Shown: positions 1-64,000 of the stretch, one piece after another
Layout: the number at the start of each line of letters is the position of its first letter
Numbering within the stretch: the stretch's first letter is position 1
Virus record (IMG/VR): IMGVR_UViG_3300027816_000052
Span: 1 to 64,000 of that record
Direction: 5' to 3' (one strand)
Length of the DNA stretch: 64,000 nt
Program-made: the position numbers and the translations under genes
The notes under the pieces: model-generated
Databases searched by the model: none
Seen by the model: only the letters and a program-made list of their open reading frames with translations
Told to the model about the DNA's origin: nothing

Positions 1-1
1 A

Positions 2-622
2 AAGAGAAGTTTTACATTTTCTCCGGGAGCATTTGCATCTTTTATAACATCATCATCAGGTGAAAGATTTGTTAAACATCTTAATAACAAATATGATGAG
101 ATTGTTGTTAATGGGGGTTTGGATTTAGAAAAAACACAAATTCAATCCTTACCGGATAATCTTCATGTTGAAGGGAGTATGTATTTAAATAGATGCAAAA
201 ATCTTCAATCCTTACCGGATAATCTTTATGTTGGGGGAAGTTTGGATTTAGGTTATACACCAATTCAATCCTTACCGGATAATCTTTATTTTGAAAAAGA
301 TTTGGATTTAGGAGGAACACCAATTCAATCCTTACCTGATAATCTTTATGTTGAAGGGAGTATGTATTTAAATAGATGCAAAAATCTTCAATCCTTACCG
401 GATAATCTTTATGTTGGGGGATATTTGAATTTACATGAAACACAAATTCAATCCTTACCGGATAATCTTTATGTTGGGGGATATCTAAATTTAGATAAAA
501 CACCAATTCAATCCTTGCCGGATAATCTTGATGTTAAAGGGGTAATTTATATTCGTGGAACACCATTAAAAGATAATGATGAATTGGTTGCGAAATATAG
601 GAAAAAATATAGGATTTTATAG
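2..622 (+). CDS. LRR-like repeat protein, 5'-truncated by the window edge
   Basis: 20/21-aa repeats IQSLPDNLxVxGxLxLxxT. The frame is open back to position 2, and nt 1-118 closely match the 5' part of paralog 42879..43697. Confidence 0.85.
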   Translation, partial: KRSFTFSPGAFASFITSSSGERFVKHLNNKYDEIVVNGGLDLEKTQIQSLPDNLHVEGSMYLNRCKNLQSLPDNLYVGGSLDLGYTPIQSLPDNLYFEKDLDLGGTPIQSLPDNLYVEGSMYLNRCKNLQSLPDNLYVGGYLNLHETQIQSLPDNLYVGGYLNLDKTPIQSLPDNLDVKGVIYIRGTPLKDNDELVAKYRKKYRIL

Positions 623-634
623 AACTTTTTAATT

Positions 635-1114
635 ATGAAAAAGATTAAATTAACAGAATCCGACCTTTATAATATTATAGAGCGAGTTCTTCTTGAGCAA
701 GAGGAAAATAATAAACGTGTTTGGAATACAACTCCAGAACGTTTTATTATGGTTCTTAATAATGTTTTTAATGGAAATTCTGAAATGTTCAGAAAAATTC
801 TTAATAAAAAATATGATAACATTATTATTAATGAAGATTTGGATTTGAGTGAATCACGAATTAAAACCTTACCTGATAATCTTAAAGTTAAAGGTTATCT
901 TAATTTAAATTATACAAAAATAGAATCCTTACCGGATAATCTTCATGTTGAGGGGAATTTGTATTTAGCTTTTACACGAATTTATTCTTTACCGGATAAT
1001 CTTCGTGTTGGAGGTAAAATCTATATTCATGGAACACTATTAGTTAGAAATAGTGATTTAGTTGCGGAATATAGAAACAAACATAAAATTGAAGGATATT
1101 TTTGGTCATCATGA
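635..1114 (+). CDS. LRR-like repeat protein with MKKIKLTESDL leader
   Basis: Three LPDNLxVxGxLxL repeats; N-terminus shared with 26441..27148 and 42879..43697. Confidence 0.85.
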   Translation: MKKIKLTESDLYNIIERVLLEQEENNKRVWNTTPERFIMVLNNVFNGNSEMFRKILNKKYDNIIINEDLDLSESRIKTLPDNLKVKGYLNLNYTKIESLPDNLHVEGNLYLAFTRIYSLPDNLRVGGKIYIHGTLLVRNSDLVAEYRNKHKIEGYFWSS

Positions 1115-17535: not shown

Positions 17536-17646
17536 TTTTTGTTTTTTTATATGTTTATTTGTACAATAATTATCAAAAAAGATGAAAAAGTCAAATATTT
17601 TAAAAATTTTATTTTATTTGTGATATTTATAGTAAAATAATTCATT

Positions 17647-17979
17647 ATGAGTAAAATTGTTAAACTTAAAGAAAGAGATTTAACTGAGATAGTTAAACGT
17701 GCTTTAATCGGTAAAATGTTTATAGAAGAACAAAAAAAGGAAAAGATTGAAATACCGCAAAATTGTTTTGGCGGTCCAAAAACAGGTTTAGGTGGTTTAA
17801 TTTTATTTACAACAATGTTGCAAAAAGAAGCGGATAATGGCGATATGAATAGTGAAAAATTAATTGCTGATATGAAAACCTTTTTAAAAGGTATGAATAG
17901 AGCAAACCCCGAAATGATTGCAACGTTATTAAAAAAATATAATAAAGAAAAGTACCTGCCTTGGGTGGGTTGTTTTTAA
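17647..17979 (+). CDS. Hypothetical protein with KIVKLKERDL leader
   Basis: 110 aa; ATATTTAT upstream. Confidence 0.7.
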   Translation: MSKIVKLKERDLTEIVKRALIGKMFIEEQKKEKIEIPQNCFGGPKTGLGGLILFTTMLQKEADNGDMNSEKLIADMKTFLKGMNRANPEMIATLLKKYNKEKYLPWVGCF

Positions 17980-19369: not shown

Positions 19370-19398
19370 GAAAAGGGGGAAACTTATTTCCCCTTTTC
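19370..19398. terminator. Bidirectional intrinsic terminator
   Basis: GAAAAGGGG(G)A...TCCCCTTTTC between convergent genes. Confidence 0.75.
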
Positions 19399-21570
19399 AA
19401 TTTTAACCTTATCTTTTACGAATTTTAATTTATACTTTTTCATCTCAATCATCTCACCCTTTAGAATTTCCTCGGATATAAAATCTTCCACATATTCTTG
19501 TATTGCTCGTTTTAATGGTCTTGCACCAAACTGAGGGTCAAATCCAACTTTAGCGATGTGCTCGACCAATGAATTATCATATTTGATAAAATATTTTAAT
19601 TTATTTAATCTTTCTACCAATCTATCCAATTCAATCTTAACAATTTCCTTGACATCATCTTCTTTTAATGTATTAAAGACAACAACCTCATCAATTCTAT
19701 TTAAGAATTCTGGAGCAAAGAAATTCTTCATTTCTTTTTGAATTATATCTCGTTTAGCTTCTTCATTAGCAAATGAGTTTTTACCGAAGCCAATTCCAGA
19801 ACCAAAATCTTGTATTTTTTTAACACCAAGATTTGATGTTAAAATAATTAATGAGTTTCTAAAGTTTATTTTTCTACCTAAACTATCAGTTATAAAACCT
19901 TCGTCTAAAACCCTCAATAAGATTGAGAATATTTCTTTATTTGCTTTTTCAACCTCATCAAATAAAATAACCGAATATGGTTTGTTTTTTACTTGTTCGG
20001 TTAATTGACCACCTTTATCATAACCAACATAACCGGGGGGAGCACCAACCAATCTAGATACGCTATGTTTTTCTTGATATTCTGACATATCAATTCTAAT
20101 TAAGTTATCTTCGCTACCAAAGATTTCTTTCGCCATCTGTTTAGCTAAATGAGTTTTACCAACACCACTATTACCAAGCAATATGAACGCACCAATCGGT
20201 CTATTTGGGTCTCTAATACCTAATCTATTTCTGCGAATAGCTTTCGCCATTTTTGTAATTGCTTCTTGTTGACCAACAACTTTTTCACCCACATTCTTTT
20301 CCAAATTCAATAAATTCTTTGTATCGTCAGTGTTTAATTTGTTAATTGGTATTTTTGTCATTGTTGATACAACATCATAAACCAATTCAGTTGTAACTTC
20401 TTTTCTTTTGGTTAAAAGAGTTTCTTCAAATTTCTTTTTTTCTTCATTAAGTTTATCGACAATCTTTTTTTCTTTATCCCTTAATTCCGCAGCTTTCTCA
20501 TAATCCTGTTGTTTTACAACGATTAATTTTTCTTCCTTAATTTTATGTGCTTCATCTTTAAGGTGGTTAATAATTTCCGGTAATTCAATATCTACTTGAC
20601 TTCTAGCACCAACTTCATCAATAATGTCAAATGCTTTATCGGGAAATTCTCTGTCAGTTATATATCTATCAGCAAGGTTTACACATAAATCTAAAACCTC
20701 ATCATTGTAACTTACTCGATGATAAAATTCATATTTATCTTTAACGTTTTTTAAAATTTCTAATGTTTCTTCTTTTGAGGGTGAATCAACAACAACTTTT
20801 TGAAATCTTCGTTCTAATGCACCATCTTTTTCAAAATTTTCACGATATTCATCTAGCGTTGTTGCACCGATACATTGAATTTCTCCTCTTGCTAATGCTG
20901 GTTTAAAGATGTTTGACGCATCTAATGACCCAGATGAATTACCAGCACCAACTAATGTATGAATTTCATCAATAAAGACAATTATATCGGGGTTATTTTG
21001 TAATTCTTCAAGAATAACTTTAAGACGTTCTTCAAATTGACCTCTATATTTTGTCCCAGCAACAATAGATGTTAAATCAAGTAGTACAATTCTTTTATTT
21101 TCAAGGTTTCTTGGACATTCACCTAGATAAATTTTCATAGCAAGACCTTCAACTATGGCAGTTTTACCACAATTATGTGAAGATATGCCATTTGTTAAAT
21201 ATTTTCTTTCCTCATCTAATACTTCTAAATCAAAAGTATCGTGAACCCCAATATATTCTTTTTCAATAACATCATGTAATTGATTATCGTCATACCAAAC
21301 TAAATCTCCAATATTAATATTCTTTAATGATAACCAATATGTGTTATTCTGTTCTTCAACTAAATTATTTGCACAATCAAAAGATGTCTCAACTAAATGG
21401 GATTCTGAACCAGAAAGCTCAACGTTATTTGATAATGTTATTTTATAACACTCTTTTTTTGTTTTTTTAAACAAATTACCAATTAATTTGTAACCAGATG
21501 GGGTCTTTACTTTATAAGTTCCCCCGTTTTTTTCAACATCGTTAAAAAAATCTTCAATTTTTATTTTCAT
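19384..21570 (-). CDS. clpC: IntC (133 aa) fused to the C-extein of a ClpC-like AAA+ unfoldase
   Basis: ...SESHLV...TFDLEV...YLTNGISSHN|CGKTAIVEGLA; IVFIDEIH, ALERRF, UVR coil, GNSGVGKT, ILFDEVEKA, FGARPLKR. Confidence 0.92.
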   Translation of the reverse strand: MKIKIEDFFNDVEKNGGTYKVKTPSGYKLIGNLFKKTKKECYKITLSNNVELSGSESHLVETSFDCANNLVEEQNNTYWLSLKNINIGDLVWYDDNQLHDVIEKEYIGVHDTFDLEVLDEERKYLTNGISSHNCGKTAIVEGLAMKIYLGECPRNLENKRIVLLDLTSIVAGTKYRGQFEERLKVILEELQNNPDIIVFIDEIHTLVGAGNSSGSLDASNIFKPALARGEIQCIGATTLDEYRENFEKDGALERRFQKVVVDSPSKEETLEILKNVKDKYEFYHRVSYNDEVLDLCVNLADRYITDREFPDKAFDIIDEVGARSQVDIELPEIINHLKDEAHKIKEEKLIVVKQQDYEKAAELRDKEKKIVDKLNEEKKKFEETLLTKRKEVTTELVYDVVSTMTKIPINKLNTDDTKNLLNLEKNVGEKVVGQQEAITKMAKAIRRNRLGIRDPNRPIGAFILLGNSGVGKTHLAKQMAKEIFGSEDNLIRIDMSEYQEKHSVSRLVGAPPGYVGYDKGGQLTEQVKNKPYSVILFDEVEKANKEIFSILLRVLDEGFITDSLGRKINFRNSLIILTSNLGVKKIQDFGSGIGFGKNSFANEEAKRDIIQKEMKNFFAPEFLNRIDEVVVFNTLKEDDVKEIVKIELDRLVERLNKLKYFIKYDNSLVEHIAKVGFDPQFGARPLKRAIQEYVEDFISEEILKGEMIEMKKYKLKFVKDKVKIEKGK

Positions 21571-22907: not shown

Positions 22908-23468
22908 TTACTTTCTCTGATAAATGGGTTTTATGGTACCCGGTGTAGGTTCTATTGGTTTAGTATGTGTGGCTTTAACTTTTGATTCCTTAAAACTAAA
23001 AACTTTTAACATGTAATCTAAATACGCATCAACCGTATTTGTACCTAAGTTACCATCAACAAAATCTCTTTCTTGACCAGAACTATCTTTAAATTTTAAA
23101 GGTAAACCAGCAAGTTTCACTAAATCAGACTGAAGCGATTTAATTGCTTCTACGGAAACTCCCGATTTTTTTGCCATTTCAGTTAATTGATTCATATTAT
23201 ATTTCCTCAATTCAACTTTTGCTTTTTTTATTTCATTTTCTCTTTCCAATCGTCTTTCATCTGGCGATAAAGATGAAAATGGTACAGAAGAATATTTTCC
23301 TATTTTAAATAATTTATTAATAAACTCAATAGCAGGTGAACTTTCCTGACTCATAGATAGGGATATACTTTTCTGTTGTTCATCCAAATATTGTTGGTAA
23401 ATAGCTGTTTTGTGCATTTCCAATATTCTGGATTTTTCATTTTGGTCTATTGTGAATATTTTTTTCAT
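22908..23468 (-). CDS. Putative virion protein with PG-binding-like motif
   Basis: IKSLQSDL...DGNLGTNTVDA; leader KSRILEMHK; ATATTTAT upstream. Confidence 0.55.
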   Translation of the reverse strand: MKKIFTIDQNEKSRILEMHKTAIYQQYLDEQQKSISLSMSQESSPAIEFINKLFKIGKYSSVPFSSLSPDERRLERENEIKKAKVELRKYNMNQLTEMAKKSGVSVEAIKSLQSDLVKLAGLPLKFKDSSGQERDFVDGNLGTNTVDAYLDYMLKVFSFKESKVKATHTKPIEPTPGTIKPIYQRK

Positions 23469-26440: not shown

Positions 26441-27148
26441 TTATAATAAAGTATTTGCTTTTCCGCGAGTTAAATCTGTTGACCATTTATTTTTTTGGTC
26501 AATTGTATTTGCTTTACCTCTTTTTATTGGATAAGTTTCAGACCATTTTTGTTTTGGATTAGTCGGATTTGCCGGTCCTCTTTTTACACCGCTATCCCAT
26601 TTTGTTACCGCAGGATATGCTGGGTTTTCACCACTTGTTGGTTCTTGTTCTTTTAATTCACTGCTTTTTTTTAAAATTTTTCCTATTATACTACCGCCAA
26701 TTTTAATCCCATCTGGTAAATTTTTTATTTTTGTCCCACCAATTCTCAAATCACCACTAACATTAAGATCGTTAGGTAAAAATTTAATTCCAGTACCAGA
26801 TAAATCTAAATTACCTATAACATTAAGATTTTTTGGTAAAGCAATTAATTGTTCACAACCATATAAAATAAAAGACCCATTTATGGTAAGATTATCTGGT
26901 AAAAATTCAATATCCCCAAAGATGAATTGAATTCCTCCATTAATAATAACCTTATCATATTGTTGATTAAAAACCCTTGTTAATTTCTCAGAATCATTTC
27001 TAAATACATTTTTAAGAATCATTTTAAAATATTCTGGATTCTTATTAAAAATTCTTCTGTTATTTTTTTCTTCTTCTTGCTCAAGAAGGACCTTTCTAAC
27101 AATCCTATATAAATCTGATTCTGTTAATTTTATCTTTTTCATAACCAT
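26441..27148 (-). CDS. LRR-like protein with MKKIKLTESDL leader and C-terminal KW..RG.AN repeats
   Basis: LPDNL/LPKNL/LPNDL repeats; three KW-x5-7-RG-x-AN units. Confidence 0.8.
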   Translation of the reverse strand: MVMKKIKLTESDLYRIVRKVLLEQEEEKNNRRIFNKNPEYFKMILKNVFRNDSEKLTRVFNQQYDKVIINGGIQFIFGDIEFLPDNLTINGSFILYGCEQLIALPKNLNVIGNLDLSGTGIKFLPNDLNVSGDLRIGGTKIKNLPDGIKIGGSIIGKILKKSSELKEQEPTSGENPAYPAVTKWDSGVKRGPANPTNPKQKWSETYPIKRGKANTIDQKNKWSTDLTRGKANTLL

Positions 27149-27178
27149 AAATAGTTTGGTTTATGAAAAATATGAATT

Positions 27179-33844: not shown

Positions 33845-34630
33845 ATGAGAAATCTAATCAAAAAAGTTTTGCGTGAATTTGTATTAAAAGAAGCGGAAGA
33901 GACAGACCACGCAAAATGTCGTTATGTTAATAGAGTTGCGAATGAAAGAAATCATAAAACAACAAATGTTAAGGACAAAATTGGTAAAGAAGGAATTGAA
34001 AACATTAAATTTATCATCGAACTTGTTAAAAAAATAGATTTTCCAAAAAATATCGATATTGCAATTAATTTAGCTTATTCACCATCAAGAGATGTTAACA
34101 ATCCAGAAGGTTTTGAAAACGCAAAAGGATTTTATTTTAATGACCCTAATGATAATTGTACTAAAAAAGAAAATATTGAACCTAGCTGGGGACATTATTT
34201 GTGGTTAATAATAAGAGATAATTCTATCACAACAATAATGATTCATAGAACCAAACCAAAAGATTTAAGAGAGGTTAATATAGATAGATTAATAAATAAT
34301 TTAAATAACTATTTTGGACTTAATATTAAAGAAAAAGAACTTTCGTCGGCTGAAAATTTAAAACAAATAGATTTAACAAATGAGAGACTTTTCTTTAAGA
34401 TGATTAGTAAACCAGAAAAAAAATCTGAGGAATCTCCTTTAAAAAATGAAGAAATACTTCTTGTTAAACAAAAAAAATATGTTATTGATAAAATTAAAAA
34501 AACAATTCATCCAAAAAATAAACCAAAAGAAATACAGAAAATAGAAGAATTTATCAATTTAATTTTAAATTTAGAACCTTTTACCCCTGAAGATGAGAAA
34601 GCTATTGAATACTTAATTTCTTTGATTTGA
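33845..34630 (+). CDS. Hypothetical protein with LIKKVLRE...LKE leader
   Basis: 261 aa; ATATTTAT upstream. Confidence 0.7.
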   Translation: MRNLIKKVLREFVLKEAEETDHAKCRYVNRVANERNHKTTNVKDKIGKEGIENIKFIIELVKKIDFPKNIDIAINLAYSPSRDVNNPEGFENAKGFYFNDPNDNCTKKENIEPSWGHYLWLIIRDNSITTIMIHRTKPKDLREVNIDRLINNLNNYFGLNIKEKELSSAENLKQIDLTNERLFFKMISKPEKKSEESPLKNEEILLVKQKKYVIDKIKKTIHPKNKPKEIQKIEEFINLILNLEPFTPEDEKAIEYLISLI

Positions 34631-37492: not shown

Positions 37493-37782
37493 CGAATTAA
37501 ATATTTTGCTTGCATTTGAGATGTAAAATCAGCCTCACCCATATCTGTAACAGGAATTTCAAAACTTATCACTTCAGTATCCTCACCACCATCTCCCAAA
37601 AATAATGAATAATAAGCAACACCGAGTCTGATTTTATCAAAAAACGCTATTGGATTGTTTTTATATAGCATTTTTTTAATTTCGTTTTTTCTTATTGTAT
37701 TTAATTTTTTATCCATTTTATCTAAAGTTATTTTATCAACGCTATCCATTGCTTCTTTATATAATTCTTCGTCTGTCTTCAT
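37480..37782 (-). CDS. Hypothetical protein
   Basis: 100-aa ORF. Confidence 0.6.
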   Translation of the reverse strand: MKTDEELYKEAMDSVDKITLDKMDKKLNTIRKNEIKKMLYKNNPIAFFDKIRLGVAYYSLFLGDGGEDTEVISFEIPVTDMGEADFTSQMQAKYLIRWLA

Positions 37783-39296
37783 CGTATTAAATTAATATTA
37801 CCAATTTTATTAATTAAGTTATTAGCTATAATTCCGCTAAATTTATAAACATAAACACCATTCTGACAATTAAGCCCATCCCATGATTCGTTTTGATTGG
37901 TAAATTCATAAATTTTCTCACCCCAACTATTATAAATTTGCATTTTAAAATTTTCAATTTTTGAAATTGTTGTTACTTTAAATGAATCATTTATATTATC
38001 ATAATCGGGTGAAAATGTGTTAGGAATATAAATATCTCCACAAATTTCTGAATAAATTTCTAATGTTGTTAAATCGCCAAAACAACCAAATTCATTTATC
38101 TCATAAACACTTAATATGTTTTCAAAATTAGAAATGTTTGGTAAATTTATTGTTATAGTATTTTGTGTCAAATTTAATGTATCTTGATTTAAAATCCAAA
38201 TATATGAAGAATTTATATTACCAGTTGTTAAAAATTGTAAAGTTCTATCGAATTCTGAGCAATTTACAAAACTATTTTCACCGATAATAATAACATCTTC
38301 AGGATTTGGATTCACAACAACTAATATCGAATCGTTGTTTCTACAACCAAAAGAATCAATAAATGTATATTCAACCCAATTTGTTCCAAATTGTGGTAAA
38401 TAATTAGGACCAATATTCCAAGTACCACCAATAGGGAATGCTTGCATTTGAACCGGTGAATCATTAAAACATAGTGTGTCAACAGGATTAATTAATACTA
38501 CAGGTAATTGATTTACGTTTACAGTAAAAATAGTTGTATCTATACAATTATTAATTGTTTCTTCAATAATACTAATTTGTTGAGTCCCTATATTATTCCA
38601 AATATTTATTTGGGGATTACCTGTATAAAAAATTGAGTTATTTGTTGGATTTGCTAATTCATGAATTGTCGTATCCCCAAGACATACGGTTTGGACCAAT
38701 GGGGTTATTGGATTACTTTCAAAGTCTAAAGGAATATTGGTACCATTAAATAAATTAAATGGTGATAGATTACAGTTATTATTTCCCCAAGATCCCCAAG
38801 TACCGTCAGCACCAGCGGTTATTTGAATTATAATGTCCTCAGAGGAACATGTCTCAACAACTGTGGTTGTAAAACAAAAATTCCATGTACAATTTCCAAA
38901 ATCACCCCAATCATTACCGGGATTTCCATCAATAACACCACCTTGATTTGTTTCAAAAAACCAACCCGGTCCAGCAGAAATACCCGTTGATGATGATGTT
39001 ACCGTACCAGAAATCCAAACCCAATTACCAGAACCACCATTACAATTGGTAGGTGATGCTTGCGGAATAGGGGGTGTTAAAGAAGGACTTAGATTAATTT
39101 CAAATCCCTCAACCCAATTTGAACTAACGTTCAAACCGTTCCAACCATTCATTGTATAACACACATTTAAAACAGTTCCACTAGCGTATTGACCATTAAT
39201 TGGGGTTGGGTTTATTGAAAAACTTTCAATCCCATTACATTGATTAAACGCTAAATTACTAATTAAAGTAAAAATTATTAATAATACTTTTTTCAT
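37779..39296 (-). CDS. Secreted protein with gliding-motility-associated (T9SS type B) C-terminal domain
   Basis: Signal peptide; Ig/PKD-like repeats; C-terminal IYIPNTFSPDYDNINDSF...IYNSWGEKIY...WDG...GVYVY...GNINLIR. Confidence 0.85.
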   Translation of the reverse strand: MKKVLLIIFTLISNLAFNQCNGIESFSINPTPINGQYASGTVLNVCYTMNGWNGLNVSSNWVEGFEINLSPSLTPPIPQASPTNCNGGSGNWVWISGTVTSSSTGISAGPGWFFETNQGGVIDGNPGNDWGDFGNCTWNFCFTTTVVETCSSEDIIIQITAGADGTWGSWGNNNCNLSPFNLFNGTNIPLDFESNPITPLVQTVCLGDTTIHELANPTNNSIFYTGNPQINIWNNIGTQQISIIEETINNCIDTTIFTVNVNQLPVVLINPVDTLCFNDSPVQMQAFPIGGTWNIGPNYLPQFGTNWVEYTFIDSFGCRNNDSILVVVNPNPEDVIIIGENSFVNCSEFDRTLQFLTTGNINSSYIWILNQDTLNLTQNTITINLPNISNFENILSVYEINEFGCFGDLTTLEIYSEICGDIYIPNTFSPDYDNINDSFKVTTISKIENFKMQIYNSWGEKIYEFTNQNESWDGLNCQNGVYVYKFSGIIANNLINKIGNINLIR

Positions 39297-42819: not shown

Positions 42820-42878
42820 ATTTTATTTGAACATAATGAGGTTCTGTGTTAAAGTAAACTATTCATATATTTATGGTT

Positions 42879-43697
42879 ATGAAAAAGATTAAATTAACAG
42901 AATCGGATTTATATAGAATTGTTAGAAAGGTTCTTCTTGAGCAAGATGAAAAAAAGAAAAGTTTTACATTTTCTCCGGGTTCATTTGAATCTCTTATAAC
43001 ATCATCATCAGGTGAAAGATTTGTTAAACATCTTAATAACAAATATGATAGGGTTATTGTTAATGAAGAGTTGGATTTAAGTGAAACACCAATTCAATCC
43101 TTGCCGGATAATCTTCATGTTGAGGGAAATTTGGATTTAGAAGGAACGCAAATTCAATCCTTACCGGATAATCTTCATGTTGGGGGGAATTTGTTTTTAT
43201 ATGGATGCAAAAATCTTAAATCCTTACCGGATAATCTTTATGTTGGGGGAAATTTGGAGTTAGATGGAATACCAATTCAATACTTAGGGAATAATATTCA
43301 TGTTAAGGGAAATTTGGAGTTAGATGGAATACCAATTCAATCCTTACCGGATAATCTTCATGTTGGGGGAGATTTGAGTTTAGTAGGAACACCAATTCAA
43401 TCCTTACCGGATAATCTTCATGTTGGGGGATATTTGGATTTATATGGAACACCAATTCAATCCTTACCGGATAATCTTCATGTTGGGGGAAGTTTGTATT
43501 TAAGAGGAACACCAATTCAATCCTTACCGGATAATCTTCATGTTGAGGGAGATTTGTTTTTAGGTAAAACACCAATTCAATCCTTACCGAATAATCTTGA
43601 CGTTAAGGGGACAATTTATATTAAAGGAACACCATTAAATGATAATGATGAATTGGTTAAGAAATATGAAGAAAAATATAGAATTATTAGAGTTTAA
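42879..43697 (+). CDS. LRR-like repeat protein with MKKIKLTESDL leader
   Basis: About nine tandem 20/21-aa repeats; start re-called because ATATTTAT overlaps the ATG at 42873. Confidence 0.88.
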   Translation: MKKIKLTESDLYRIVRKVLLEQDEKKKSFTFSPGSFESLITSSSGERFVKHLNNKYDRVIVNEELDLSETPIQSLPDNLHVEGNLDLEGTQIQSLPDNLHVGGNLFLYGCKNLKSLPDNLYVGGNLELDGIPIQYLGNNIHVKGNLELDGIPIQSLPDNLHVGGDLSLVGTPIQSLPDNLHVGGYLDLYGTPIQSLPDNLHVGGSLYLRGTPIQSLPDNLHVEGDLFLGKTPIQSLPNNLDVKGTIYIKGTPLNDNDELVKKYEEKYRIIRV

Positions 43698-45012: not shown

Positions 45013-47004
45013 ATGAGTGAAGAATCGAAAATAATTTCATCGTTTTCATTACAAGAAACATTAAATCCGAAAATTTGGGATAATTATAAAAATCCTGAAA
45101 AAGCTTCGCTTAAACCAGAAATAAGAAAGAAACTTCTTGAGATTGCTCATGAGTTTATGGATTTTATTGATATTGAGTTTTTTGTTGATGATATTATTTT
45201 TACCGGTTCTCTTTCAAATTTTAATTGGTCAGATTTTTCTGACGTTGATTTACATCTTGAAGTTGATTTTACCCAGTTTGATACTGATTCAGTTGAGTTA
45301 TATCGTGAACTGTTTAATTTAAAAAAACTCTTATTTAATACCAATCATGATATTACCATAAAGGGGTTTGAGGTTGAGCTTTATGTTCAAGATATTATTG
45401 AACCCCACACAAGTGGTGGGATTTATTCGGTTCTTTTTGATGAATGGACGGTTGTACCACAAAAAAAAGATGTTAAAATAGATAGGAATCTTTTAAAGAA
45501 AAAAATTAAAACGTGGACCAATAAAATTGATGAAATTACCGAACAAGTTAAAAATGGTGATTATGACGAATCAATTTTATTAATTAAAGAATTAAGAGAT
45601 AAGATTAAAAAATATAGAAAAGCTGGTCTTGAAAAGAATGGTGAATTTTCATATGAGAATTTGGTATTCAAATACTTAAGAAGGGGTAAATATATTGAAA
45701 GATTAATAGACTTATCCAATCAATTAAAAGATAAAAAGCTGTCTTTAGAATCGTTAAATGAAGCTAAATTAATTGGTGGTGATTTTAAATGGGGTGGTGG
45801 ACCAAAAGAACACGGTAAAAGAGCATTCGGTAATTGGCAATCTGATAACGCTTATGATTTAATGGCTCCGGTAGGTACGCCCGTTTATTCATTAACTGAT
45901 GGGACAATCACAAAAACATATTTCACTGAAGGAGGTGAAAGTGGAAAACAAACTAAAATCTATGGTTGGCAAGTAACTATAAAAGGTGATGATAATAATT
46001 TTTTTTATACCCATTTAGGTGAAATAAATCCAAACATAAAGGTTGGTAATAGAATTTCTAAAGGTGATTTAATTGGTACAATTGGCGCACCTACAAGTGG
46101 TAGAAAATGGTATCCACATTTACACATTGCGGTTCAAAATGGTGATTTAAAATCATACATAAATGATACGGCAATTATAAAAAAAGAAGAAAGTATTTTT
46201 GATAAGATTTTAAAGTTTTTAGGTCTTGAAGGATTAATAACATCAGAAGAAACAAATTTTGTTAAAGAGTTAGAAAGTTTAATACAGTCAAATACTGAGT
46301 TAAAATGGGAAAAAAATAAAAAGATAGAATATAATGATAATACTAAAACACTGCAAAGCATTCTACAATTATTAGGATATTCTTTACCCAAATGGGGTGT
46401 TGATGGAAAGTTTGGTCCTGAAACAAATACGGCTGTTATTAATTTCCAAAAAGAAAATAATTTAACACCAAATGGTGTTGTTGATAACATCACACTTAAA
46501 GTAATTCTTAAAGAATTATCAAAAATTGATTTGAATCAAGATAAAATTAGTGGAATTCAAAAAAATAAAGAAAATCTAAAAATAAACCCAACAAGTAATA
46601 AAAATAAAATTTTAAAGTTTTTAACCGATAAGGGATTAACAATAGAACAAGCATCTGGAGTAGCTGGTAATTTACAAGCAGAATCTAATTTTAATCCGAG
46701 TGCTGTTGGCGATAATGGAACATCTTTAGGTATTGCTCAATGGCATAAAAGTAGAAAAGATAATTTAATTAATTTTTGTAATTCAAAAAAACAAAATTCA
46801 GAATCACTTGATTGTCAATTAGATTTCTTGTGGAGTGAGTTAAATACAAAATATTCAAATGTTTTATCCTCTATTAAGGCAAGTAACTCTGCTGGTGATG
46901 TAGCTGAAATTTTTGCATCAAAATACGAAAAACCAAGTAGTACAGATTATAGTAAAAGAATAAATTTTGCAGAAAAAATATATAGTGATACAACAATTTC
47001 TTAA
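45013..47004 (+). CDS. Nucleotidyltransferase + M23 peptidase + PG-binding + tail-lysozyme fusion
   Basis: FTGSLSNFNWSDFSDVDLHL; YDLMAPVGTPV...YTHL...HLHI; LQLLGY...VDGKFGPET; AGNLQAESNFNP...GIAQW. Confidence 0.8.
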   Translation: MSEESKIISSFSLQETLNPKIWDNYKNPEKASLKPEIRKKLLEIAHEFMDFIDIEFFVDDIIFTGSLSNFNWSDFSDVDLHLEVDFTQFDTDSVELYRELFNLKKLLFNTNHDITIKGFEVELYVQDIIEPHTSGGIYSVLFDEWTVVPQKKDVKIDRNLLKKKIKTWTNKIDEITEQVKNGDYDESILLIKELRDKIKKYRKAGLEKNGEFSYENLVFKYLRRGKYIERLIDLSNQLKDKKLSLESLNEAKLIGGDFKWGGGPKEHGKRAFGNWQSDNAYDLMAPVGTPVYSLTDGTITKTYFTEGGESGKQTKIYGWQVTIKGDDNNFFYTHLGEINPNIKVGNRISKGDLIGTIGAPTSGRKWYPHLHIAVQNGDLKSYINDTAIIKKEESIFDKILKFLGLEGLITSEETNFVKELESLIQSNTELKWEKNKKIEYNDNTKTLQSILQLLGYSLPKWGVDGKFGPETNTAVINFQKENNLTPNGVVDNITLKVILKELSKIDLNQDKISGIQKNKENLKINPTSNKNKILKFLTDKGLTIEQASGVAGNLQAESNFNPSAVGDNGTSLGIAQWHKSRKDNLINFCNSKKQNSESLDCQLDFLWSELNTKYSNVLSSIKASNSAGDVAEIFASKYEKPSSTDYSKRINFAEKIYSDTTIS

Positions 47005-50776: not shown

Positions 50777-52546
50777 ATGCAAGGATTAACAAAAGAGCAA
50801 TTAGCGTTAGAGTATGTTAGGTGTTTAAAAAGCACACCATATGCACTTAAAACGTATTTACAAACATATGATAACACGGTACAAAAATATGTCCCTCTTG
50901 AGCTATTCAAAGACCAGCAACAACTAATCAACGATTATGATACGTTTGAAGAAAACATTGCGTTAAAATATCGTCAAGCTGGCGTATCAACAGCTACAGC
51001 GGGTTGGGCTTCAAAAATACTTGCTTTTGCGAAAAAAGAAAAACCTGAAAAAATTCTAATTATTGCAAACAAATTGGATACCGCCGTTGAGATGGCGAAT
51101 AAGATTAGAAGTTTTATTGACCAGTGGCCTAAATGGGTTGGTATTGAGTTTTCAGATGAAAAGAACGCTGCTAGACATTTTAAATTAAATAATGATAGTG
51201 AGGTTAAAGCTGTTGCCACTTCTAAAGATGCTCTTAGAGGTTATACACCAACAATTCTTATTTTTGATGAGGCAGCTTATATTGAAGCTGATGATGATTT
51301 CTGGGCTGCTTGTATGGCATCTCTTTCCACCGGTGGTAAAGTCATTGTAATATCAACACCAAACGGATTTGATCCAATTTATTATGAAATTTATGACCAA
51401 TCAATTCGTAATATGAATAACTTCAAAATTACAGAAATGTATTGGTATAGAGATCCCAGATATACAAAAGATTTATATCTAGTTAAAACAAATGATATCG
51501 TGGATTATCTTTTAAATAGAGAAGAAAGAAAAGATTTAGAAATTATTGATTTTTCACATATAAGTCCACATGAAAGAGATTTTAATATAATCAAGGATTA
51601 TATTGGTCAAGGGTTCAAACCATGCTCAACATGGTTTGAAAATATGGTTAAAAAATTAAAATATGATAGAAGAAAAGTTGCACAAGAACTAGATTGTCAG
51701 TTTTTAGGTTCAGGTGACAACGTTGTAGATTCAACAATTCTTGAAGATATTAGAGAAAATCAAGTTTGTGAGCCAAAATATAAAACAATGGGAGGTTCTT
51801 TATGGGTTTGGAAAGAACCCGAACTTGGTCATAAGTACGTTTGTGGCTTGGATGTCTCAAGAGGAGACAGTGATGATTTTTCAGCTTTTCAGATAATTGA
51901 TTTTGAAACCAGAGAACAAGTTGCGGAATATCTTGGTAAAGTACCACCAGATGTGATGGCGGAAATAGCGTATAAGTGGGGAACAACATATAACGCTTAT
52001 ATTGTTATTGATATTACCGGTGGTATGGGGGTTTCTACTGCTAGAAAATTACAAGAATTAAATTATAAAAATTTATATATCGATGGGCTTGAGCTTGGTA
52101 ATAAATGGAAATATGATGCAAAAGCACTTGATAAAATTCCCGGTATTAATTTCAATAATAAAAGAGTTCAGATTATTTCTTCATTTGAGGAGGCTTTAAG
52201 ACATAAATTTAAAGTTTATAGTAGTAGATTATTAAATGAGTTAAATTCATTTGTTTATATTAATGGTAGACCTGATCACCAAAAGGGTCGTCATGATGAT
52301 TTAATCATGTCAATTGCTATGGCAATTTATGTTTCCGAATTTTCTTTCACACAATTAGAAAAAGTTACGGAACATACGAAAGTTATGATTGAATCATGGC
52401 AAGTTAATACATATGAACCAAAACAAACTTCACAATTCTTTAATCCAAGCGTATCTTTTACTGATGATAAAAGTATATATAGAAATAACCCAACAAGAAA
52501 AGACTATGAACAACATTCTTGGTTATTTGGTGGGATAAGAAGGTAA
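50777..52546 (+). CDS. gp17: Terminase large subunit (T4 gp17-like)
   Basis: LKYRQAGVST Walker A, LIFDEAA Walker B, ISTPNG, GLDVSRG and HDDLIMS nuclease motifs. Confidence 0.93.
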   Translation: MQGLTKEQLALEYVRCLKSTPYALKTYLQTYDNTVQKYVPLELFKDQQQLINDYDTFEENIALKYRQAGVSTATAGWASKILAFAKKEKPEKILIIANKLDTAVEMANKIRSFIDQWPKWVGIEFSDEKNAARHFKLNNDSEVKAVATSKDALRGYTPTILIFDEAAYIEADDDFWAACMASLSTGGKVIVISTPNGFDPIYYEIYDQSIRNMNNFKITEMYWYRDPRYTKDLYLVKTNDIVDYLLNREERKDLEIIDFSHISPHERDFNIIKDYIGQGFKPCSTWFENMVKKLKYDRRKVAQELDCQFLGSGDNVVDSTILEDIRENQVCEPKYKTMGGSLWVWKEPELGHKYVCGLDVSRGDSDDFSAFQIIDFETREQVAEYLGKVPPDVMAEIAYKWGTTYNAYIVIDITGGMGVSTARKLQELNYKNLYIDGLELGNKWKYDAKALDKIPGINFNNKRVQIISSFEEALRHKFKVYSSRLLNELNSFVYINGRPDHQKGRHDDLIMSIAMAIYVSEFSFTQLEKVTEHTKVMIESWQVNTYEPKQTSQFFNPSVSFTDDKSIYRNNPTRKDYEQHSWLFGGIRR

Positions 52547-52558
52547 AAAAGATATAAA

Positions 52559-55500
52559 ATGGAAGATGAAAAACTAACAATATGGCAACGACTTTCTAAA
52601 GGATTTGGTCCAAACTCATTACTTGGACAAGAAAGTCCAACATTTAAATTTGATAAGAAGGTTTTATTAAAAACACCGAATAAGCAAGAGTACGAAAGAG
52701 AAAAACTCCAAGCACAACAAACAGCTTATTTAACATACCAATGGAGTAAGATTGAAAATAATTTATATACACAATCAGTATATTATGAACCCACTAGATT
52801 AGCATCATATTATGATTATGAGAGTATGGAATATTTTCCGGAAATTTCAGCAGCATTAGATACATTTTCGGAAGAATCTACAACGCCAAATCAAGATGGT
52901 CAAATGTTACAGATTTATTCTGAATCAAAAAGAATTAAATCAATTTTAACAGATTTATTCTATAATCAATTAGATATTAACACAAATCTACCCATGTGGA
53001 CAAGAAATACTTGTAAGTATGGTGATAATTTTGTGTTTTTAAAACTAGACCCAGAAAAAGGTATTGTTGGTTGTTTTCAACTACCAAATATTGAAATTGA
53101 ACGTATTGAAAAGGGGATGGTTAAACGTCCGGGTGGGACACCAAATAGCGACCCAGAAAATAAACAAATGAAATTCTCTTGGAAACAAAAAGATTTAGAT
53201 TTTAATACTTGGGAGGTCGCACATTTTAGATTATTGGGTGATGATAGAAAATTACCATACGGTACTTCGATGTTAGAAAAAGCGAGAAGAATTTGGAAAC
53301 AATTAGTTCTTGCTGAAGATGCAATGTTAATTTATAGAACATCTAGAGCACCGGAAAGAAGAGTATTTAAAGTTTTTGTTGGTAATATGGATGATAAAGA
53401 TGTTGAAGCATATGTGCAAAGATTTGCAAATAAATTTAAGCGAGACCAAGTAGCGGACCCAAAAACGGGTAATGTGGATTTACGTTTTAATCAAATGGCG
53501 GTAGACCAAGATTATTTTGTACCGGTTAGGGATATTGCTGCACCTAATCCGATTGATACATTACCGGGAGCGTGTATTGATTTAAATACCAGAATTCCCC
53601 TTCTTGATGGTAGAACTTTAACTTTACAACAAATAATTAATGAGTGGGATAATGGTAATAGAAACTTATGGGTTTATTCTTGTGACCCAAATACAGGGTC
53701 CGTACATCCGGGTATGGTAACTTGGGCTGGTGTAACAAGAAAAGACGCTGAAGTTATTAAAATTACATTAGACAATGGTGAAGAGGTGATTACAACTCCA
53801 GACCATAAATTTGTTCATAGAACTAGAGAATTTGTTGAAGCGAAAGATTTAATTGTTGGGGATAGTTTAATGCCTTTTTATTCAAGAACCGAAAAAATAA
53901 AGACCAACACTAATGATTATCACCAAATTTTTGATAATGAAAAAAATCAATGGGTTTTTACGCATAGAATGGTAAAAAACAGTACTGTTGGTAGTTCTTT
54001 AGTAAAAGAATGGGTTTTTAATTCTGAATTTAAAAATAAAGATAAAAAAATAATTCACCATAAAGACCATAATCGCTTTAATAATAATCCAAATAATTTA
54101 CTAATAATGAATGGTGAAGACCATTTAAAATATCACCAACATATCATAAAAGAAACGATTTGGAAAGATATTGAACTTAATAAGAAAAAAATTTCAGAAG
54201 GTATTAAAAATTATTTAAATAATCTTTCTTCAGATGAATTACAAAAAAGACATGAAAGAATTAATAATCCAATATCAAAAGCTAAAACAACTAAAAAGTT
54301 ATTGGAATGGAATAAAAATGATGAAAATTTAAAAAATAAAGGTAAAAAAATTTCAAAAGCTTATACAGAAGAAAGAAAAAATAAGATAAAGGAATTAAAT
54401 TTAATAAGGTGGTTGAATGATGATTATCGAAATAAAGTTTTTTCTAAAAAACAAACAATAACATTTGATGATTATATATATAATTCATTTGTTAGTGAAT
54501 TTAAAAAGACTTTACGTGCTGATTTAGCGTTAAAGAACTTAAATAATTCTTTTGAATTTATTTCACATTTTAAACAAATTAATGAGGAAATTAGAAGTTC
54601 GTTAACAAACTTAAATGAATTCACGCAAAACCATGTAGATAAAATGGTTAAACAACAAGGGTTTAAAAATTTTACTGAATGGAAACATTTTGAGTGTAAA
54701 AAGAGAGGATTTAAAAATATTCGTCAATGGAAATATAATGTTGAGAAAGAAATTTATTTTAACCATAAAATAACAAAAATTGAATGGTTAACAAATAAAA
54801 TTGACACTGGTACGATTACGGTTGATGGTAATGAATTATATTCAAAATCTCACACTTTTGCTATTGAAAGTGGTATTTTTATTAAAAATTCTAACCTTTC
54901 TGAAATTGCAGATATAGAATACATCCAGAAAAAACTTTTAACAGCATTAAGGATACCAAAAGCGTTCCTTGGGTTTGAAGAAGTTGTTGCTGATGGTAAA
55001 AATCTTGCGTTACAAGATATTCGTTTTGCTAGAACAATTAACAGAATACAAAAAAGTATGTTAGCGGAATTAAATAAAATTGCTATTATACATTTATTTA
55101 TTTTAGGTTTTGAAGATGAACTTTCTAACTTTACATTAGGATTAACAAACCCATCAACACAAGCTGATTTATTAAAGGTTGAGGTTTGGAAAGAGAAAAT
55201 CTTACTTTATAAAGACGCTGTTGCAGGAATTGAGGGTATTGCACCAACTTCACATTCTTGGGCTAAAAAACATATTCTTGGTTTCTCGGATGATGAAATT
55301 AAACTTGATATTCAACAACAAAGAATTGAAAAGGCGGTCGCAAAAGAACTTGAGAACACACCAAATGTGATTGTAAAAACAGGTATTTTTGATAGTGTTG
55401 ATGCAATCTACGGTCAAAAAGGTGGTGGTACTCAAGCTGGAACTCCCCCTCAAGAACCAACATCTGATATGACAATGCCTGAAACTAGTCCAGCATCATC

Positions 55501-55699
55501 ACCATCAATAACTCCACCAGAAGCTCCTGAGAGCGCACCAACTGAAACTCCAACAACAGTACCTGAATCAAAACAGGAAAGAGTAAATATTTTACTTGAA
55601 GGTGGTCTTTTAAATGAAGATGAAGAAATCGATTTGAGTAAAGCTAGAATTCAATTAGGTGAAATGGAAGAACATTTAAATAAACTTCTAAAGTCGTGA
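52559..55699 (+). CDS. gp20: Portal protein (T4 gp20-like) containing an intein
   Basis: YPEISAALD, MLIYRTSRAPERRVF, DYFVP, IDTLPGA|...|SNLSEIADIEYIQKKL. Confidence 0.92.
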   Translation: MEDEKLTIWQRLSKGFGPNSLLGQESPTFKFDKKVLLKTPNKQEYEREKLQAQQTAYLTYQWSKIENNLYTQSVYYEPTRLASYYDYESMEYFPEISAALDTFSEESTTPNQDGQMLQIYSESKRIKSILTDLFYNQLDINTNLPMWTRNTCKYGDNFVFLKLDPEKGIVGCFQLPNIEIERIEKGMVKRPGGTPNSDPENKQMKFSWKQKDLDFNTWEVAHFRLLGDDRKLPYGTSMLEKARRIWKQLVLAEDAMLIYRTSRAPERRVFKVFVGNMDDKDVEAYVQRFANKFKRDQVADPKTGNVDLRFNQMAVDQDYFVPVRDIAAPNPIDTLPGACIDLNTRIPLLDGRTLTLQQIINEWDNGNRNLWVYSCDPNTGSVHPGMVTWAGVTRKDAEVIKITLDNGEEVITTPDHKFVHRTREFVEAKDLIVGDSLMPFYSRTEKIKTNTNDYHQIFDNEKNQWVFTHRMVKNSTVGSSLVKEWVFNSEFKNKDKKIIHHKDHNRFNNNPNNLLIMNGEDHLKYHQHIIKETIWKDIELNKKKISEGIKNYLNNLSSDELQKRHERINNPISKAKTTKKLLEWNKNDENLKNKGKKISKAYTEERKNKIKELNLIRWLNDDYRNKVFSKKQTITFDDYIYNSFVSEFKKTLRADLALKNLNNSFEFISHFKQINEEIRSSLTNLNEFTQNHVDKMVKQQGFKNFTEWKHFECKKRGFKNIRQWKYNVEKEIYFNHKITKIEWLTNKIDTGTITVDGNELYSKSHTFAIESGIFIKNSNLSEIADIEYIQKKLLTALRIPKAFLGFEEVVADGKNLALQDIRFARTINRIQKSMLAELNKIAIIHLFILGFEDELSNFTLGLTNPSTQADLLKVEVWKEKILLYKDAVAGIEGIAPTSHSWAKKHILGFSDDEIKLDIQQQRIEKAVAKELENTPNVIVKTGIFDSVDAIYGQKGGGTQAGTPPQEPTSDMTMPETSPASSPSITPPEAPESAPTETPTTVPESKQERVNILLEGGLLNEDEEIDLSKARIQLGEMEEHLNKLLKS
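53573..54889 (+). mobile_element. Intein (439 aa) with HNH homing endonuclease
   Basis: CIDLNTRIPLLDG, TTPDHKF block B, WVFTHR...IHHKDHNRFNNNPNNL, HTFAIESGIFIKN|S. Confidence 0.9.
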
Positions 55700-55726: not shown

Positions 55727-56434
55727 ATGAAAACCTTTGGAACTATAAAAACAAAAATTGAGGATAAATTAACTGATTCCTACAAAAAAAATACATTTAA
55801 AAAAGAATTAAAGAAATTTAAAACACTTGTTTTAGAAGATAAAAATGTTGTGCAAATTTATCACATTTATGACAATTTATCTAAACCTCAAGGATATTCC
55901 GAAGAAACATCAAAATTATTTTTAGATGAAGCAATTAATATGGTTAAAAAATCAATCGAAAAAACTGATTTTAAAAAATTAAATGAATGGATAAGTGATG
56001 TAAAATCTGAAAACAGATATTCACATATTGATATGATTGTTGAGGGTAAAGTCCAACAAATTGAATCTATTATTAATAGTAAAAAATTAATAATTGAAAA
56101 TTTACAGAAAAAACAAGATAAGAAAGAGGTAATTAATCTACCACTAAAAACTATGTTAGGTGTAGCAAATAAAGCATTAAATTCAATTGTGTCTAATTTG
56201 AATGAGGAAGAGAAAAAAGAGTTAACTCATATTATTTCTTTATCTGAAAATGATATAAAAATTCAATTTAGTGATTTAAAGGAAAGTACAATAAAAAAAT
56301 TAGAAAGTTTATTATTAGAACAAACTGATGTCGAGTTGGTTAATAAGATTCAAGATACTATTACAAAAATAAAAGATGAGACTCCCGGAAGTTTAAGTCT
56401 ATATAAGTTACTAACGTTAAATAAAACATTTTAA
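55727..56434 (+). CDS. Hypothetical head-module protein
   Basis: 235 aa after portal; ATATTTAT upstream. Confidence 0.7.
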   Translation: MKTFGTIKTKIEDKLTDSYKKNTFKKELKKFKTLVLEDKNVVQIYHIYDNLSKPQGYSEETSKLFLDEAINMVKKSIEKTDFKKLNEWISDVKSENRYSHIDMIVEGKVQQIESIINSKKLIIENLQKKQDKKEVINLPLKTMLGVANKALNSIVSNLNEEEKKELTHIISLSENDIKIQFSDLKESTIKKLESLLLEQTDVELVNKIQDTITKIKDETPGSLSLYKLLTLNKTF

Positions 56435-56504: not shown

Positions 56505-56975
56505 ATGAAGACAGGAAAAACATTAAAACTAACCGGTTATAATAATATAAAAGTTAGTTACGGTACGGTGGATTTTAAAAATTTTAAATCGTTATATTTA
56601 AATATTCAAAGTTGGTTGCAACCAAAGATTGATTTGGAAGATTGGGATCGAGTCGTGGGTAATTTACGAAAAGATGTAAAGCACGTAATTCATGATATAT
56701 TAAATCCAATTTTTTTTGAAAATAATTATATTGTTGATTTGGATTTAAGAACTAGCGGAATCCAATATGGAAAAAGGAGTTTTATGAATTTAGAAATAAC
56801 ACTTTACGTTAAAAACAATATAAACTTTAAATCAAGTGAACTTAGAAATGAACTTAATTACATTTCAAGAACAATAAATGATAATGTCTTTTTAAATAAT
56901 AAATATTTTACATATTCAATAACAAAAAAGATTACACAAGAAAATATATTAGAAAATACACATATTTATAGATAA
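56505..56975 (+). CDS. Hypothetical protein
   Basis: 156-aa ORF. Confidence 0.7.
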   Translation: MKTGKTLKLTGYNNIKVSYGTVDFKNFKSLYLNIQSWLQPKIDLEDWDRVVGNLRKDVKHVIHDILNPIFFENNYIVDLDLRTSGIQYGKRSFMNLEITLYVKNNINFKSSELRNELNYISRTINDNVFLNNKYFTYSITKKITQENILENTHIYR

Positions 56976-56985
56976 AAAATTATCT

Positions 56986-57708
56986 ATGAAAATCTTAGGA
57001 CCAAACGAAATAGGACAAAGAGGTATTCTTATTGAAATGGATGCTGGTTATATTTCACCAAGTGATGAACGTAATTTAGCAATCATTAAAGAATCTAAAA
57101 ACTTATTGGATTATTCAAAACCATTTGAATTTTATGCTGTATTACAAAAATACGGAGTACCAAACAGAAATGGTAGAATTTATCCTGAAAGTATATTAAA
57201 AAGAGAATCTGAAAATTATTTAAAATTAATCAAACAAGGGAAAGCTATGAGTGAATTAAATCACCCAGAATCTTCCCTTATTGATTTGGATAGAGTTTCA
57301 CATCTTATTACAGATATGTGGTGGGACGGTCATATTTTAATGGGTAAATTAAAGTTATTAACATCACCCGGATTCCATGAAAGAGGTATTGTATCAACAA
57401 AAGCGGACATTGCTGCTAATTTGTTAAGACACGGTGCAACTTTGGGTATTTCCTCAAGAGGTGTTGGTTCATTGGTTAAAAAGGGTGAACAAAATGAGGT
57501 TCAATCAGATTTTGAATTAATTTGTTTTGATTTGGTATCATCACCTTCAACACCGGGTGCGTATCTCTTTAGTGATGTTAATGATAGAAACAAATTTGAA
57601 GAGAATATTGAGGAAGAGAAAAAATTGAGACAGCAGCCTATTTCAGATAAAAAAGAAATTAAGTCACTTGACTTAATGAAAAGATTATCCGATTATTTGG
57701 GAAAATAA
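56986..57708 (+). CDS. gp21: Prohead core protease (T4 gp21-like)
   Basis: NRNGRIYP, ELNHP, GISSRGVGS, FDLVSSPSTPGA. Confidence 0.93.
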   Translation: MKILGPNEIGQRGILIEMDAGYISPSDERNLAIIKESKNLLDYSKPFEFYAVLQKYGVPNRNGRIYPESILKRESENYLKLIKQGKAMSELNHPESSLIDLDRVSHLITDMWWDGHILMGKLKLLTSPGFHERGIVSTKADIAANLLRHGATLGISSRGVGSLVKKGEQNEVQSDFELICFDLVSSPSTPGAYLFSDVNDRNKFEENIEEEKKLRQQPISDKKEIKSLDLMKRLSDYLGK

Positions 57709-63532: not shown

Positions 63533-64000
63533 ATGAAAGTTAAAAAAGAAATAATTTTTAGATTTTTGGATTTAAGATTTAGTCGATATACGTTGGTTAA
63601 ATCAAAATGTTCTGTTACTGGTGATTTGAGTTTTATCGTACCAGCTTGGGCAATGTATGCAATTGAATGCGGTAATTACGAGACATTAAGTGAAGAGGAA
63701 ATTGAAAGTCTTAATGATTTTTTGGATGATTTGGTTAAAACTTATGGTAATGCTGTGTTAGCTTTTGGGGATGAATCATATTTTTCAACAATCAATGATA
63801 TTGATAATTTAGGTGGTGACGTTTTTCAGGCTAGTTTAGTTCCAAGTGTAGTAAATACCTATATTGTGGATTTAAATAACGATAAATTAATAATGAAACA
63901 CGAATTTAAAAGTAATTATGTTTTTTTTAAGGATATAATATTTGAAATGAATTCTATTTTTAGTTTAAAAGAAGACGATTACAATTCACTTAGAGAAATT
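63533..64000 (+). CDS. Hypothetical protein, 3'-truncated by the window edge
   Basis: MKVKKEIIF... open to the end of the window; ATATTTAT at 63512. Confidence 0.55.
   Translation, partial: MKVKKEIIFRFLDLRFSRYTLVKSKCSVTGDLSFIVPAWAMYAIECGNYETLSEEEIESLNDFLDDLVKTYGNAVLAFGDESYFSTINDIDNLGGDVFQASLVPSVVNTYIVDLNNDKLIMKHEFKSNYVFFKDIIFEMNSIFSLKEDDYNSLREI

Follow-up and report, generated by a model that had tools for sequence, protein, structure and literature searches.

Does the short leader that opens several genes of this phage act as a signal directing their products to a common destination and, if it does, is that destination the phage head? The question arises at positions 635-1114 of the window, the 64,000-nucleotide stretch analyzed here, which constitutes the first 64 kb of an IMG/VR record of 256,029 bp (30% G+C, CheckV completeness estimate 85%); positions given on the full record carry the prefix G000. 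The initial annotation had noted nearly the same 23-residue leader on three LRR genes, together with looser versions on unrelated ORFs, and had read it as a portable, protease-cleaved tag that loads diverse proteins into the head. The record starts in the middle of an LRR gene (window 1-2), meaning that the contig ends are not genome ends, and its 3′ end (G000 256010-256029) is a run of C that is probably an assembly or library artefact.

Within the window, the leader takes the form MKKIKLTESDLY..I....L.EQ, and the following features bear on its distribution.

635-1114, plus strand: LRR gene of 159 aa with three 20-residue repeats, a short paralogue
635-700, plus strand: leader of that gene, residues M1-E22, MKKIKLTESDLYNIIERVLLE
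42879-43697, plus strand: LRR gene of 272 aa, with its leader at 42879-42944
26441-27142, minus strand: LRR gene of 233 aa, with its leader at 27077-27142 and a divergent, non-LRR C-terminal tail
2-622, plus strand: fourth LRR paralogue, its leader and first residues lost to the contig start
17647-17979, plus strand: non-LRR protein of 110 aa, with the leader variant MSKIVKLKERDL...FIEE followed by Q at 17647-17730
33845-34630, plus strand: possible short form of the leader, MRNLIKKVLREFVLKE followed by A, with ATATTTAT 15 nt upstream
63533-64000, plus strand: start of a 533-aa ORF that runs on to G000 65134

The three LRR genes with a complete N-terminal leader, 635-1114 (plus), 42879-43697 (plus) and 26441-27142 (minus), have 18-22 of 23 residues in common, which bears out the near-identity first noted; the true start of the latter two is the second ATG of an ATG-GTT-ATG sequence. 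The leader of 635-1114 contains L-T-E at residues 6-8 and L-L-E at residues 20-22, followed by Q. The genome-wide HMM search that had been proposed as a check recovers 12 strong copies (E 1e-12 to 1e-16) and two weaker ones in the 256-kb genome, and a six-frame search of the genome yields 14 copies. Among the looser versions, the one at 17647 is a true copy on a non-LRR cargo (HMM E 2e-12), but the leader HMM does not detect those proposed at 22908 and 25728, whose [L/I]-x-E ending is at chance level. This tripeptide occurs by chance in residues 8-35 of 35% of other genes, and on its own an LxE ending is therefore almost uninformative. An N-terminal LxE is found in 55% of genes preceded by the promoter-like motif described below versus 35% of genes that lack it (p 0.013), a difference that includes the leader family, and we rejected the generic presence of LxE in an N-terminus as too weak a criterion. 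For 33845 the outcome is divided: the leader HMM does not match it, but its N-terminus fits a pattern taken from the C-terminal half of the leader (I-K-K-V-L-x-E), which is 24-fold enriched at N-termini but was drawn after seeing the data, and the gene may carry a short form of the leader.

Ten to twelve of the leader-family cargos in this genome are LRR proteins (ten or eleven of the 14 copies counted). The other cargos, besides 17647-17979 in the window, and the looser forms on the full record are listed below.

G000 151556-152029: non-LRR leader cargo
G000 207543-207944: non-LRR leader cargo
G000 67557-68417: non-LRR cargo in which the leader is internal
67106-67537: looser I-I-T-E-x-Q-L form, with a Kyano_Gp96 domain as cargo
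87716-88000: looser I-I-T-E-x-Q-L form
225373-225720: looser I-I-T-E-x-Q-L form

Every looser variant in this genome retains [L/I]-x-E at both places. The ORF at G000 63533-65134 consists of a 385-residue N-terminal domain, an internal leader (residue ~386, G000 64676-64768) whose canonical Met has been lost, and an LRR domain, and the same fusion is conserved in a complete relative (G040, L115 298-1767). A DUF5872-like basic motif (…S-A-Y-A-S-G-W-A-A-K-W-Y-K-K-Q-G-G-G-W) is present in two leader-associated ORFs, G000 67557-68417 and 63533-65134.

The leader is not confined to this genome. Scanning IMG/VR with the pattern I-[K/R]-L-T-E-S-[D/E/Q]-L-[I/Y] returned 210 matches, of which 133 loci were confirmed by tblastn. 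All leader-bearing contigs are apparently fragments of one clade of T4-like jumbo phages, with genomes of about 300 kb according to the CheckV estimates for these contigs. The complete relatives carry 8-17 leader genes each, often in tandem arrays of small ORFs. An S77 protease is encoded in 20 of 50 leader-bearing records and in all four complete ones; this co-occurrence is confounded by ancestry and does not constitute independent evidence, since all leader contigs belong to one clade.

The leader consensus is M-K-K-x-I-[K/R]-L-T-E-S-D-L-x-x-[I/L]-V-K-R-V-[I/V/L]-x-E, with a mean net charge of +3. Among 88 unique leaders of relatives, 86 have I, V, L or M at the position 12 residues after the invariant Thr, and at the position 14 residues after it 86 have Glu and two have Asp. 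The residue following this terminal Glu is Q, S, N, D, E or G, and beyond it conservation vanishes. A further 39 copies, found only by a looser expression in the flanks and hence not selected by the scan pattern, have Glu at the final position in 37 cases. The invariant L-T-E at the front end constitutes a second L-x-E motif, and where orthologues of a single cargo carry diverged leaders, these still contain [L/I/F]-x-E. The invariant residues are encoded by many synonymous codons (Leu uses five, and Ser both TCN and AGT). Because synonymous codons vary freely at these positions, selection acts on the peptide and not on the DNA or RNA, and an element operating at either of those levels was rejected for the same reason.

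Searching 50,697 GenBank phage records by tblastn with the 29-aa leader and with the G000 151556-152029 cargo gave no match; given the low power of such a short query, this shows only that a close cultured relative with the leader is absent from GenBank phages. String searches of the literature with hexapeptides of the leader core returned unrelated papers only, and 40000-64000 had no DNA-level relative in a megablast of the phage collection. A degenerate DNA pattern for the leader occurred six times in 185,579 species genomes, always in MAGs or in a Prochlorococcus single-cell assembly. The latter, Prochlorococcus sp. AG-409-L21, contributes a 64-kb contig of 28-29% G+C (QCKH01000009.1; L108, L109) with two leader genes and a gp23 gene of the clade. 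A relative may have Prochlorococcus as its host or adhere to it, at odds with the hint to Bacteroidota provided by the window: the 505-aa product of 37779-39296 (minus) has at its C-terminus a CHU_C type IX secretion sorting domain (E 3e-14), unusual for a phage gene, and on this basis the host of the present phage is probably a member of the Bacteroidota.

What the leader is attached to differs markedly between cargos. Stripped of their leaders, 96 proteins of relatives fall into 71 blastp clusters, and most of these cargos are acidic proteins of 60-200 aa without adhesin features. Most cargos receive no function from Pfam or PHROGs. The Gp96-like cargo has no match in a PDB sequence search, and Kyano_Gp96 relatives in cyanophages and other phages lack the leader, matching only from residue 38. 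The three leader-bearing LRR cargos of the window are solenoids of 20-residue repeats, and repeat number among the LRR paralogues of the genome ranges from 3 to 14; these paralogues also resemble one another upstream in the DNA and over the 35 residues that follow the leader. In the AlphaFold2 model of 42879-43697 (mean pLDDT 89.8), the LRR solenoid begins at residue 28 with pLDDT above 90, and the leader forms a detached amphipathic helix at residues 8-20 with pLDDT in the 60s. Confidence is lowest (pLDDT <50) in a disordered linker at residues 21-25, around the putative cut. The model of the non-LRR leader protein G000 151556-152029 is uninformative, with a mean pLDDT of only 45.

The best Foldseek matches of the LRR cargo include the LRR domains of SspH1 and IpaH (probability 1.0, TM-score 0.4-0.5). 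Bacterial IpaH/SspH-type proteins have, as here, a 20-residue repeat with an L-P-D-x-L core and a solenoid fold, and the phage proteins fall within the 20-22-residue, solenoid-forming repeats of the IpaH/SspH/YopM type. Pfam searches nevertheless found no NEL E3-ligase or other catalytic domain and no type III secretion signal in the phage LRR proteins, and Pfam LRR models do not match them. Since they have no Pfam domain beyond the repeats and end in a short C-terminal cap, we do not regard them as members of the IpaH/SspH/YopM family. A protein of Edwardsiella phage Edno5 (Edno5_0047, L125 3938-4681) is about 50% identical over the 20-residue repeats, but lacks the leader and starts directly with the repeats; Edno5 is a temperate enterobacterial phage, and the gene belongs to its early operon, adjoining repressor and recombination genes. 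The existence of this leaderless homologue in a temperate phage indicates that the repeat type is a mobile phage accessory module.

If the leader directs proteins to the head and is removed there, the phage should possess a head-maturation protease of suitable specificity. The head module found in the window is of T4 type and is laid out as follows.

50777-52546: large terminase
52559-55699: gp20-type portal (Portal_T4) with an intein/HNH insert
55727-56434, plus strand: small protein encoded between the portal and protease genes, in the gp67/gp68 position
56505-56975: second small protein in the gp67/gp68 position
56986-57708, plus strand: gp21-family prohead serine protease, Peptidase_S77 (PF03420, E 5e-22)
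58046-59593, plus strand: very acidic scaffold-like protein in the gp22 position
59617-61476, plus strand: gp23-type major capsid protein (Gp23 domain match)

The capsid protein contains I-N-E at residues 58-60 (nt 59788-59796) followed by A-A, with the putative cut before A61. This site, identical in four relatives, lies between blocks that align to T4 gp23 residues 6-41 and 91-126, an interval containing the T4 cut between E65 and A66. Its retention in the interval homologous to that of the T4 cut argues for a T4-like protease specificity. The protease itself has L-I-E at residues 15-17, recalling LIE-9 of T4 gp21, and ATATTTAT stands 16 nt upstream of its gene. In the product of 55727-56434, L-L-E at residues 196-198 (nt 56312-56320) is followed by Q, giving the same tetrapeptide as at the end of the leader. 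The scaffold-like protein contains 149 D/E versus 69 K/R residues (net charge ~-80) and 15 [L/I]-x-E motifs.

Several further properties of the region can be recorded. The 1046-aa portal product includes an insert of ~300-400 residues with similarity to intein-splicing and HNH endonuclease sequences, and thus appears to bear an intein. Between its N-terminal block and conserved core, the capsid protein is longer than T4 gp23 by some 240 residues (roughly 107-350); those of relatives are similarly long (587-638 aa), including that on the Prochlorococcus single-cell contig, and the nearest capsid proteins in GenBank, from Microcystis phage Mel-JY01 and the Flavobacterium 'immuto' phages, are ~42% identical. 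Downstream, the ORF at 61596-63023 joins N-terminal endonuclease-VII-like/HNH-like similarity to a C-terminal Mom-family DNA-modification domain.

The DNA ahead of the leader genes connects them with the head module. The octamer ATATTTAT occurs 127 times in the genome. Genome-wide, the 40 nt ahead of called starts contain it 53 times in the sense and 12 times in the antisense orientation, and its distance to the ATG is in most cases 13-21 nt or exactly 4 nt. Three instances precede leader genes of the window.

42867-42874, plus strand: ATATTTAT, 4 nt before the ATG of 42879
27147-27154, minus strand: variant CTATTTAT, 4 nt before the ATG at 27142
17623-17630, plus strand: ATATTTAT, 16 nt before the ATG of 17647

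The initial annotation had placed this motif or a close variant ahead of most leader-bearing genes. We find it, exact or with one base changed, 4-16 nt ahead of 42879, 27142 and 17647, but not at 635. More broadly, the motif precedes most leader genes, as well as 22908, 25728 (true start 26408) and 33845, and it is the commonest 8-mer upstream of leader genes in relatives. It also precedes the protease, the scaffold-like gene, the 55727 gene, the tail lysozyme/M23 gene at 45013, the tail sheath, one tail fibre and one adaptor-like gene, and it is absent upstream of the large genes for ribonucleotide reductase, a DnaB-type helicase and SbcC. From the content of the genes behind it, we infer that ATATTTAT is a promoter of the late or structural class. 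TATTTATA is the reverse complement of the T4 late promoter TATAAATA, which means that the motif is not the T4 late promoter in the same orientation. The 4-nt spacing between motif and ATG, seen in the window at 42867-42881 and 27140-27154, recurs at G000 91139 and 116421, and suggests that genes with this gap have leaderless or near-leaderless mRNAs. The 663-aa product of 45013-47004, whose gene has ATATTTAT 21 nt upstream, combines M23 peptidase, peptidoglycan-binding and phage tail lysozyme domains and is probably a virion-borne cell-wall hydrolase.

We consider it somewhat better than an even bet that the leader serves in capsid targeting and cleavage, as a portable propeptide at the N-terminus whose function parallels that of the T4 CTS. 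All features of a capsid-loading tag that can be read from sequence are present (a head module, an S77 protease, varied cargos, a terminal [I/V/L]-x-E, a disordered linker predicted at the site and the promoter-like motif), and to this extent the original proposal stands, with the exception of its looser examples at 22908 and 25728. Packaging, cleavage and injection of the cargos are extrapolated from these features, as are docking to the prohead core, residence in the head and ejection with the DNA. Under such a scheme, some 14 genes in this genome (8-17 per complete relative) would be transcribed with the head and tail genes from the ATATTTAT-type promoter, and each product would begin with the basic amphipathic helix of the leader consensus. 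The helix would dock the protein to the core of the assembling prohead, where the very acidic scaffold-like protein 58046-59593 is a likely, though conjectural, partner. After closure of the shell, the protease 56986-57708 would cut behind the terminal [I/V/L]-x-E, with the internal L-T-E as a possible second site, and the mature cargo, freed inside the head, would leave with the DNA at infection. Such cargo comprises mainly an expanded LRR binding family in this genome, and dozens of small, often acidic and unrelated proteins in relatives.

Several observations weigh against this reading. The [L/I]-x-E motif is short, and the terminal Glu could equally end a helix that binds another partner. 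The residue after the cut is mostly Q, S, N, D or E, versus Ala at the capsid-protein site, and the LRR proteins of 250-380 aa exceed the T4 internal proteins in size. Two conserved ORFs (G000 63533-65134 and its G040 counterpart) have an internal leader, which is not expected of a strictly N-terminal signal, although internal copies do fit a cleavage module.

The alternative that survives best, which we nonetheless regard as unlikely, is that the leader is a helix by which the proteins dock to a shared extracapsid partner, either a host hub or a phage machine, and acts as a recruitment or degradation tag for host-takeover proteins. A portable amphipathic helix on many small, diverse and often acidic proteins would suit such a role, as would the internal leader copies and the Edno5 LRR homologue, an early-region cytoplasmic accessory gene. 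The phage also encodes a two-ring Clp-type ATPase as a conceivable partner: 19384-21570 (minus) specifies a full ClpB/ClpC-like AAA+ ATPase with AAA, AAA_lid_9, AAA_2 and ClpB_D2-small domains. Docking outside the capsid, however, leaves the near-invariant terminal [I/V/L]-x-E and the second L-T-E without a reason, and sits poorly with a promoter-like motif common to head and tail genes and not to replication genes; we know of no precedent for an extracapsid docking tag of this kind. Less probable again is a sorting or recruitment peptide new to science, belonging to a jumbo-phage clade, by which dozens of small effectors would reach one shared machine of the phage or its host, such as the Clp-type unfoldase, with the terminal x-E used for recognition and not for cleavage.

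We find it improbable that the leader anchors exchangeable proteins to the exterior of the virion (capsid surface, whiskers or baseplate), with the LRR proteins binding receptors or acting as adhesins. Multi-tailspike phages are known to possess conserved N-terminal anchors, the promoter-like motif is of late, structural type, and repeat numbers varying from 3 to 14 are of a kind often seen in receptor-binding proteins. Known anchors are, on the other hand, folded modules of at least ~100 residues, not 22-residue helices joined to a disordered acidic linker; the small acidic cargos that predominate in relatives are devoid of adhesin features, and the protease-type motif is left unexplained.

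Still weaker is the notion that the common N-terminus is not a signal at all, but only what recent duplication and gene conversion have left in a single LRR family. The likeness of the LRR paralogues in upstream DNA and in the 35 post-leader residues is what paralogy would produce, but the leader also stands on at least four non-LRR proteins here and on at least 71 cargo clusters in relatives, its synonymous sites are free to vary and its conservation ends sharply at Glu22. A paralogue-only origin is contradicted by this cargo diversity and was rejected. An export signal (Sec, Tat, lipoprotein or type IX) is scarcely credible. In its favour, the leader is N-terminal, begins M-K-K and belongs to a phage whose host is probably one of the Bacteroidota, as the CHU_C domain on one ORF suggests. 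Against it, the leader has charged residues every 2-4 positions and no uninterrupted hydrophobic core, and a Sec-type signal was rejected for lack of such a core of ~10 or more residues after the basic N-terminus; type IX signals are C-terminal, and AlphaFold2 predicts an amphipathic helix and not a membrane-spanning segment.

Returning to the propeptide reading, its consequences would extend well beyond this locus. If the leader is a capsid-loading signal, it marks the proteins that an entire clade of uncultured T4-like phages, with genomes of ~300 kb and probably Bacteroidota hosts, is likely to inject, and the 8-17 genes per genome, in over 70 cargo families, would form a candidate list of anti-defence and host-takeover factors. 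The T4 strategy of one tag for many cargos would have been reinvented, or have diverged beyond recognition, and been scaled up. Part of the cargo would be an expanding family of LRR binders whose variation in repeats suggests an arms race with host targets, and the tag would lend itself naturally to loading foreign proteins into phages of this group.

The closest known parallel is T4, in which a CTS of 10-20 residues is the sole feature common to diverse internal proteins and propeptides can hold multiple sites (PMC9026906, PMC5694885, PMC3012670). Like the leader, the CTS of IPI, IPII, IPIII and Alt is a short N-terminal propeptide on unrelated, fast-evolving proteins (PMC9026906, PMC3012670, PMC5694885), and both end in the L/I-x-E of a gp21-family prohead protease, L/I-x-E being the cleavage motif of gp21 itself (PMC9026906). 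The T4 head module of gp20, gp21, gp22-like protein and gp23 is matched in this phage, and T4 internal-protein genes, as the tagged genes here, come in variable sets and sometimes in tandem arrays. The differences are nonetheless substantial. At 22 residues, the leader is twice as long as the 10-residue T4 tag; it is basic with two consensus sites, whereas the T4 CTS is slightly acidic. A comparison by eye reveals no evident likeness, and we make no claim of homology. Genomes of the clade carry 8-17 tagged genes, against three or four in T4. Unlike in T4, the cargo here includes an LRR family of 10-12 members and the leader sometimes lies inside a longer ORF.

A second parallel is found in the phiKZ-like phage SPN3US, whose gp53 and gp54 have identical 15-residue N-termini (PMC5694885). 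Its ejection proteins are paralogous inner-head proteins that, like the leader proteins, combine a conserved N-terminus containing several protease motifs with an otherwise diverged sequence (PMC5694885), and its protease, distantly related to gp21, cleaves behind Glu residues. The phiKZ-like motif is S/A-x-E, however, and the propeptides are mostly longer than 100 residues, compared with the 22-residue leader; the T=27 capsid with its inner body is also unlike the head architecture of this phage. In having a hydrophobic residue two positions before the Glu, this phage sides with T4 and not with the phiKZ-like S/A-x-E. By analogy, then, the functional scheme would be that known from T4, and what would be new is a longer, basic, two-site tag on a far larger and different set of cargos in an uncultured clade of jumbo phages.
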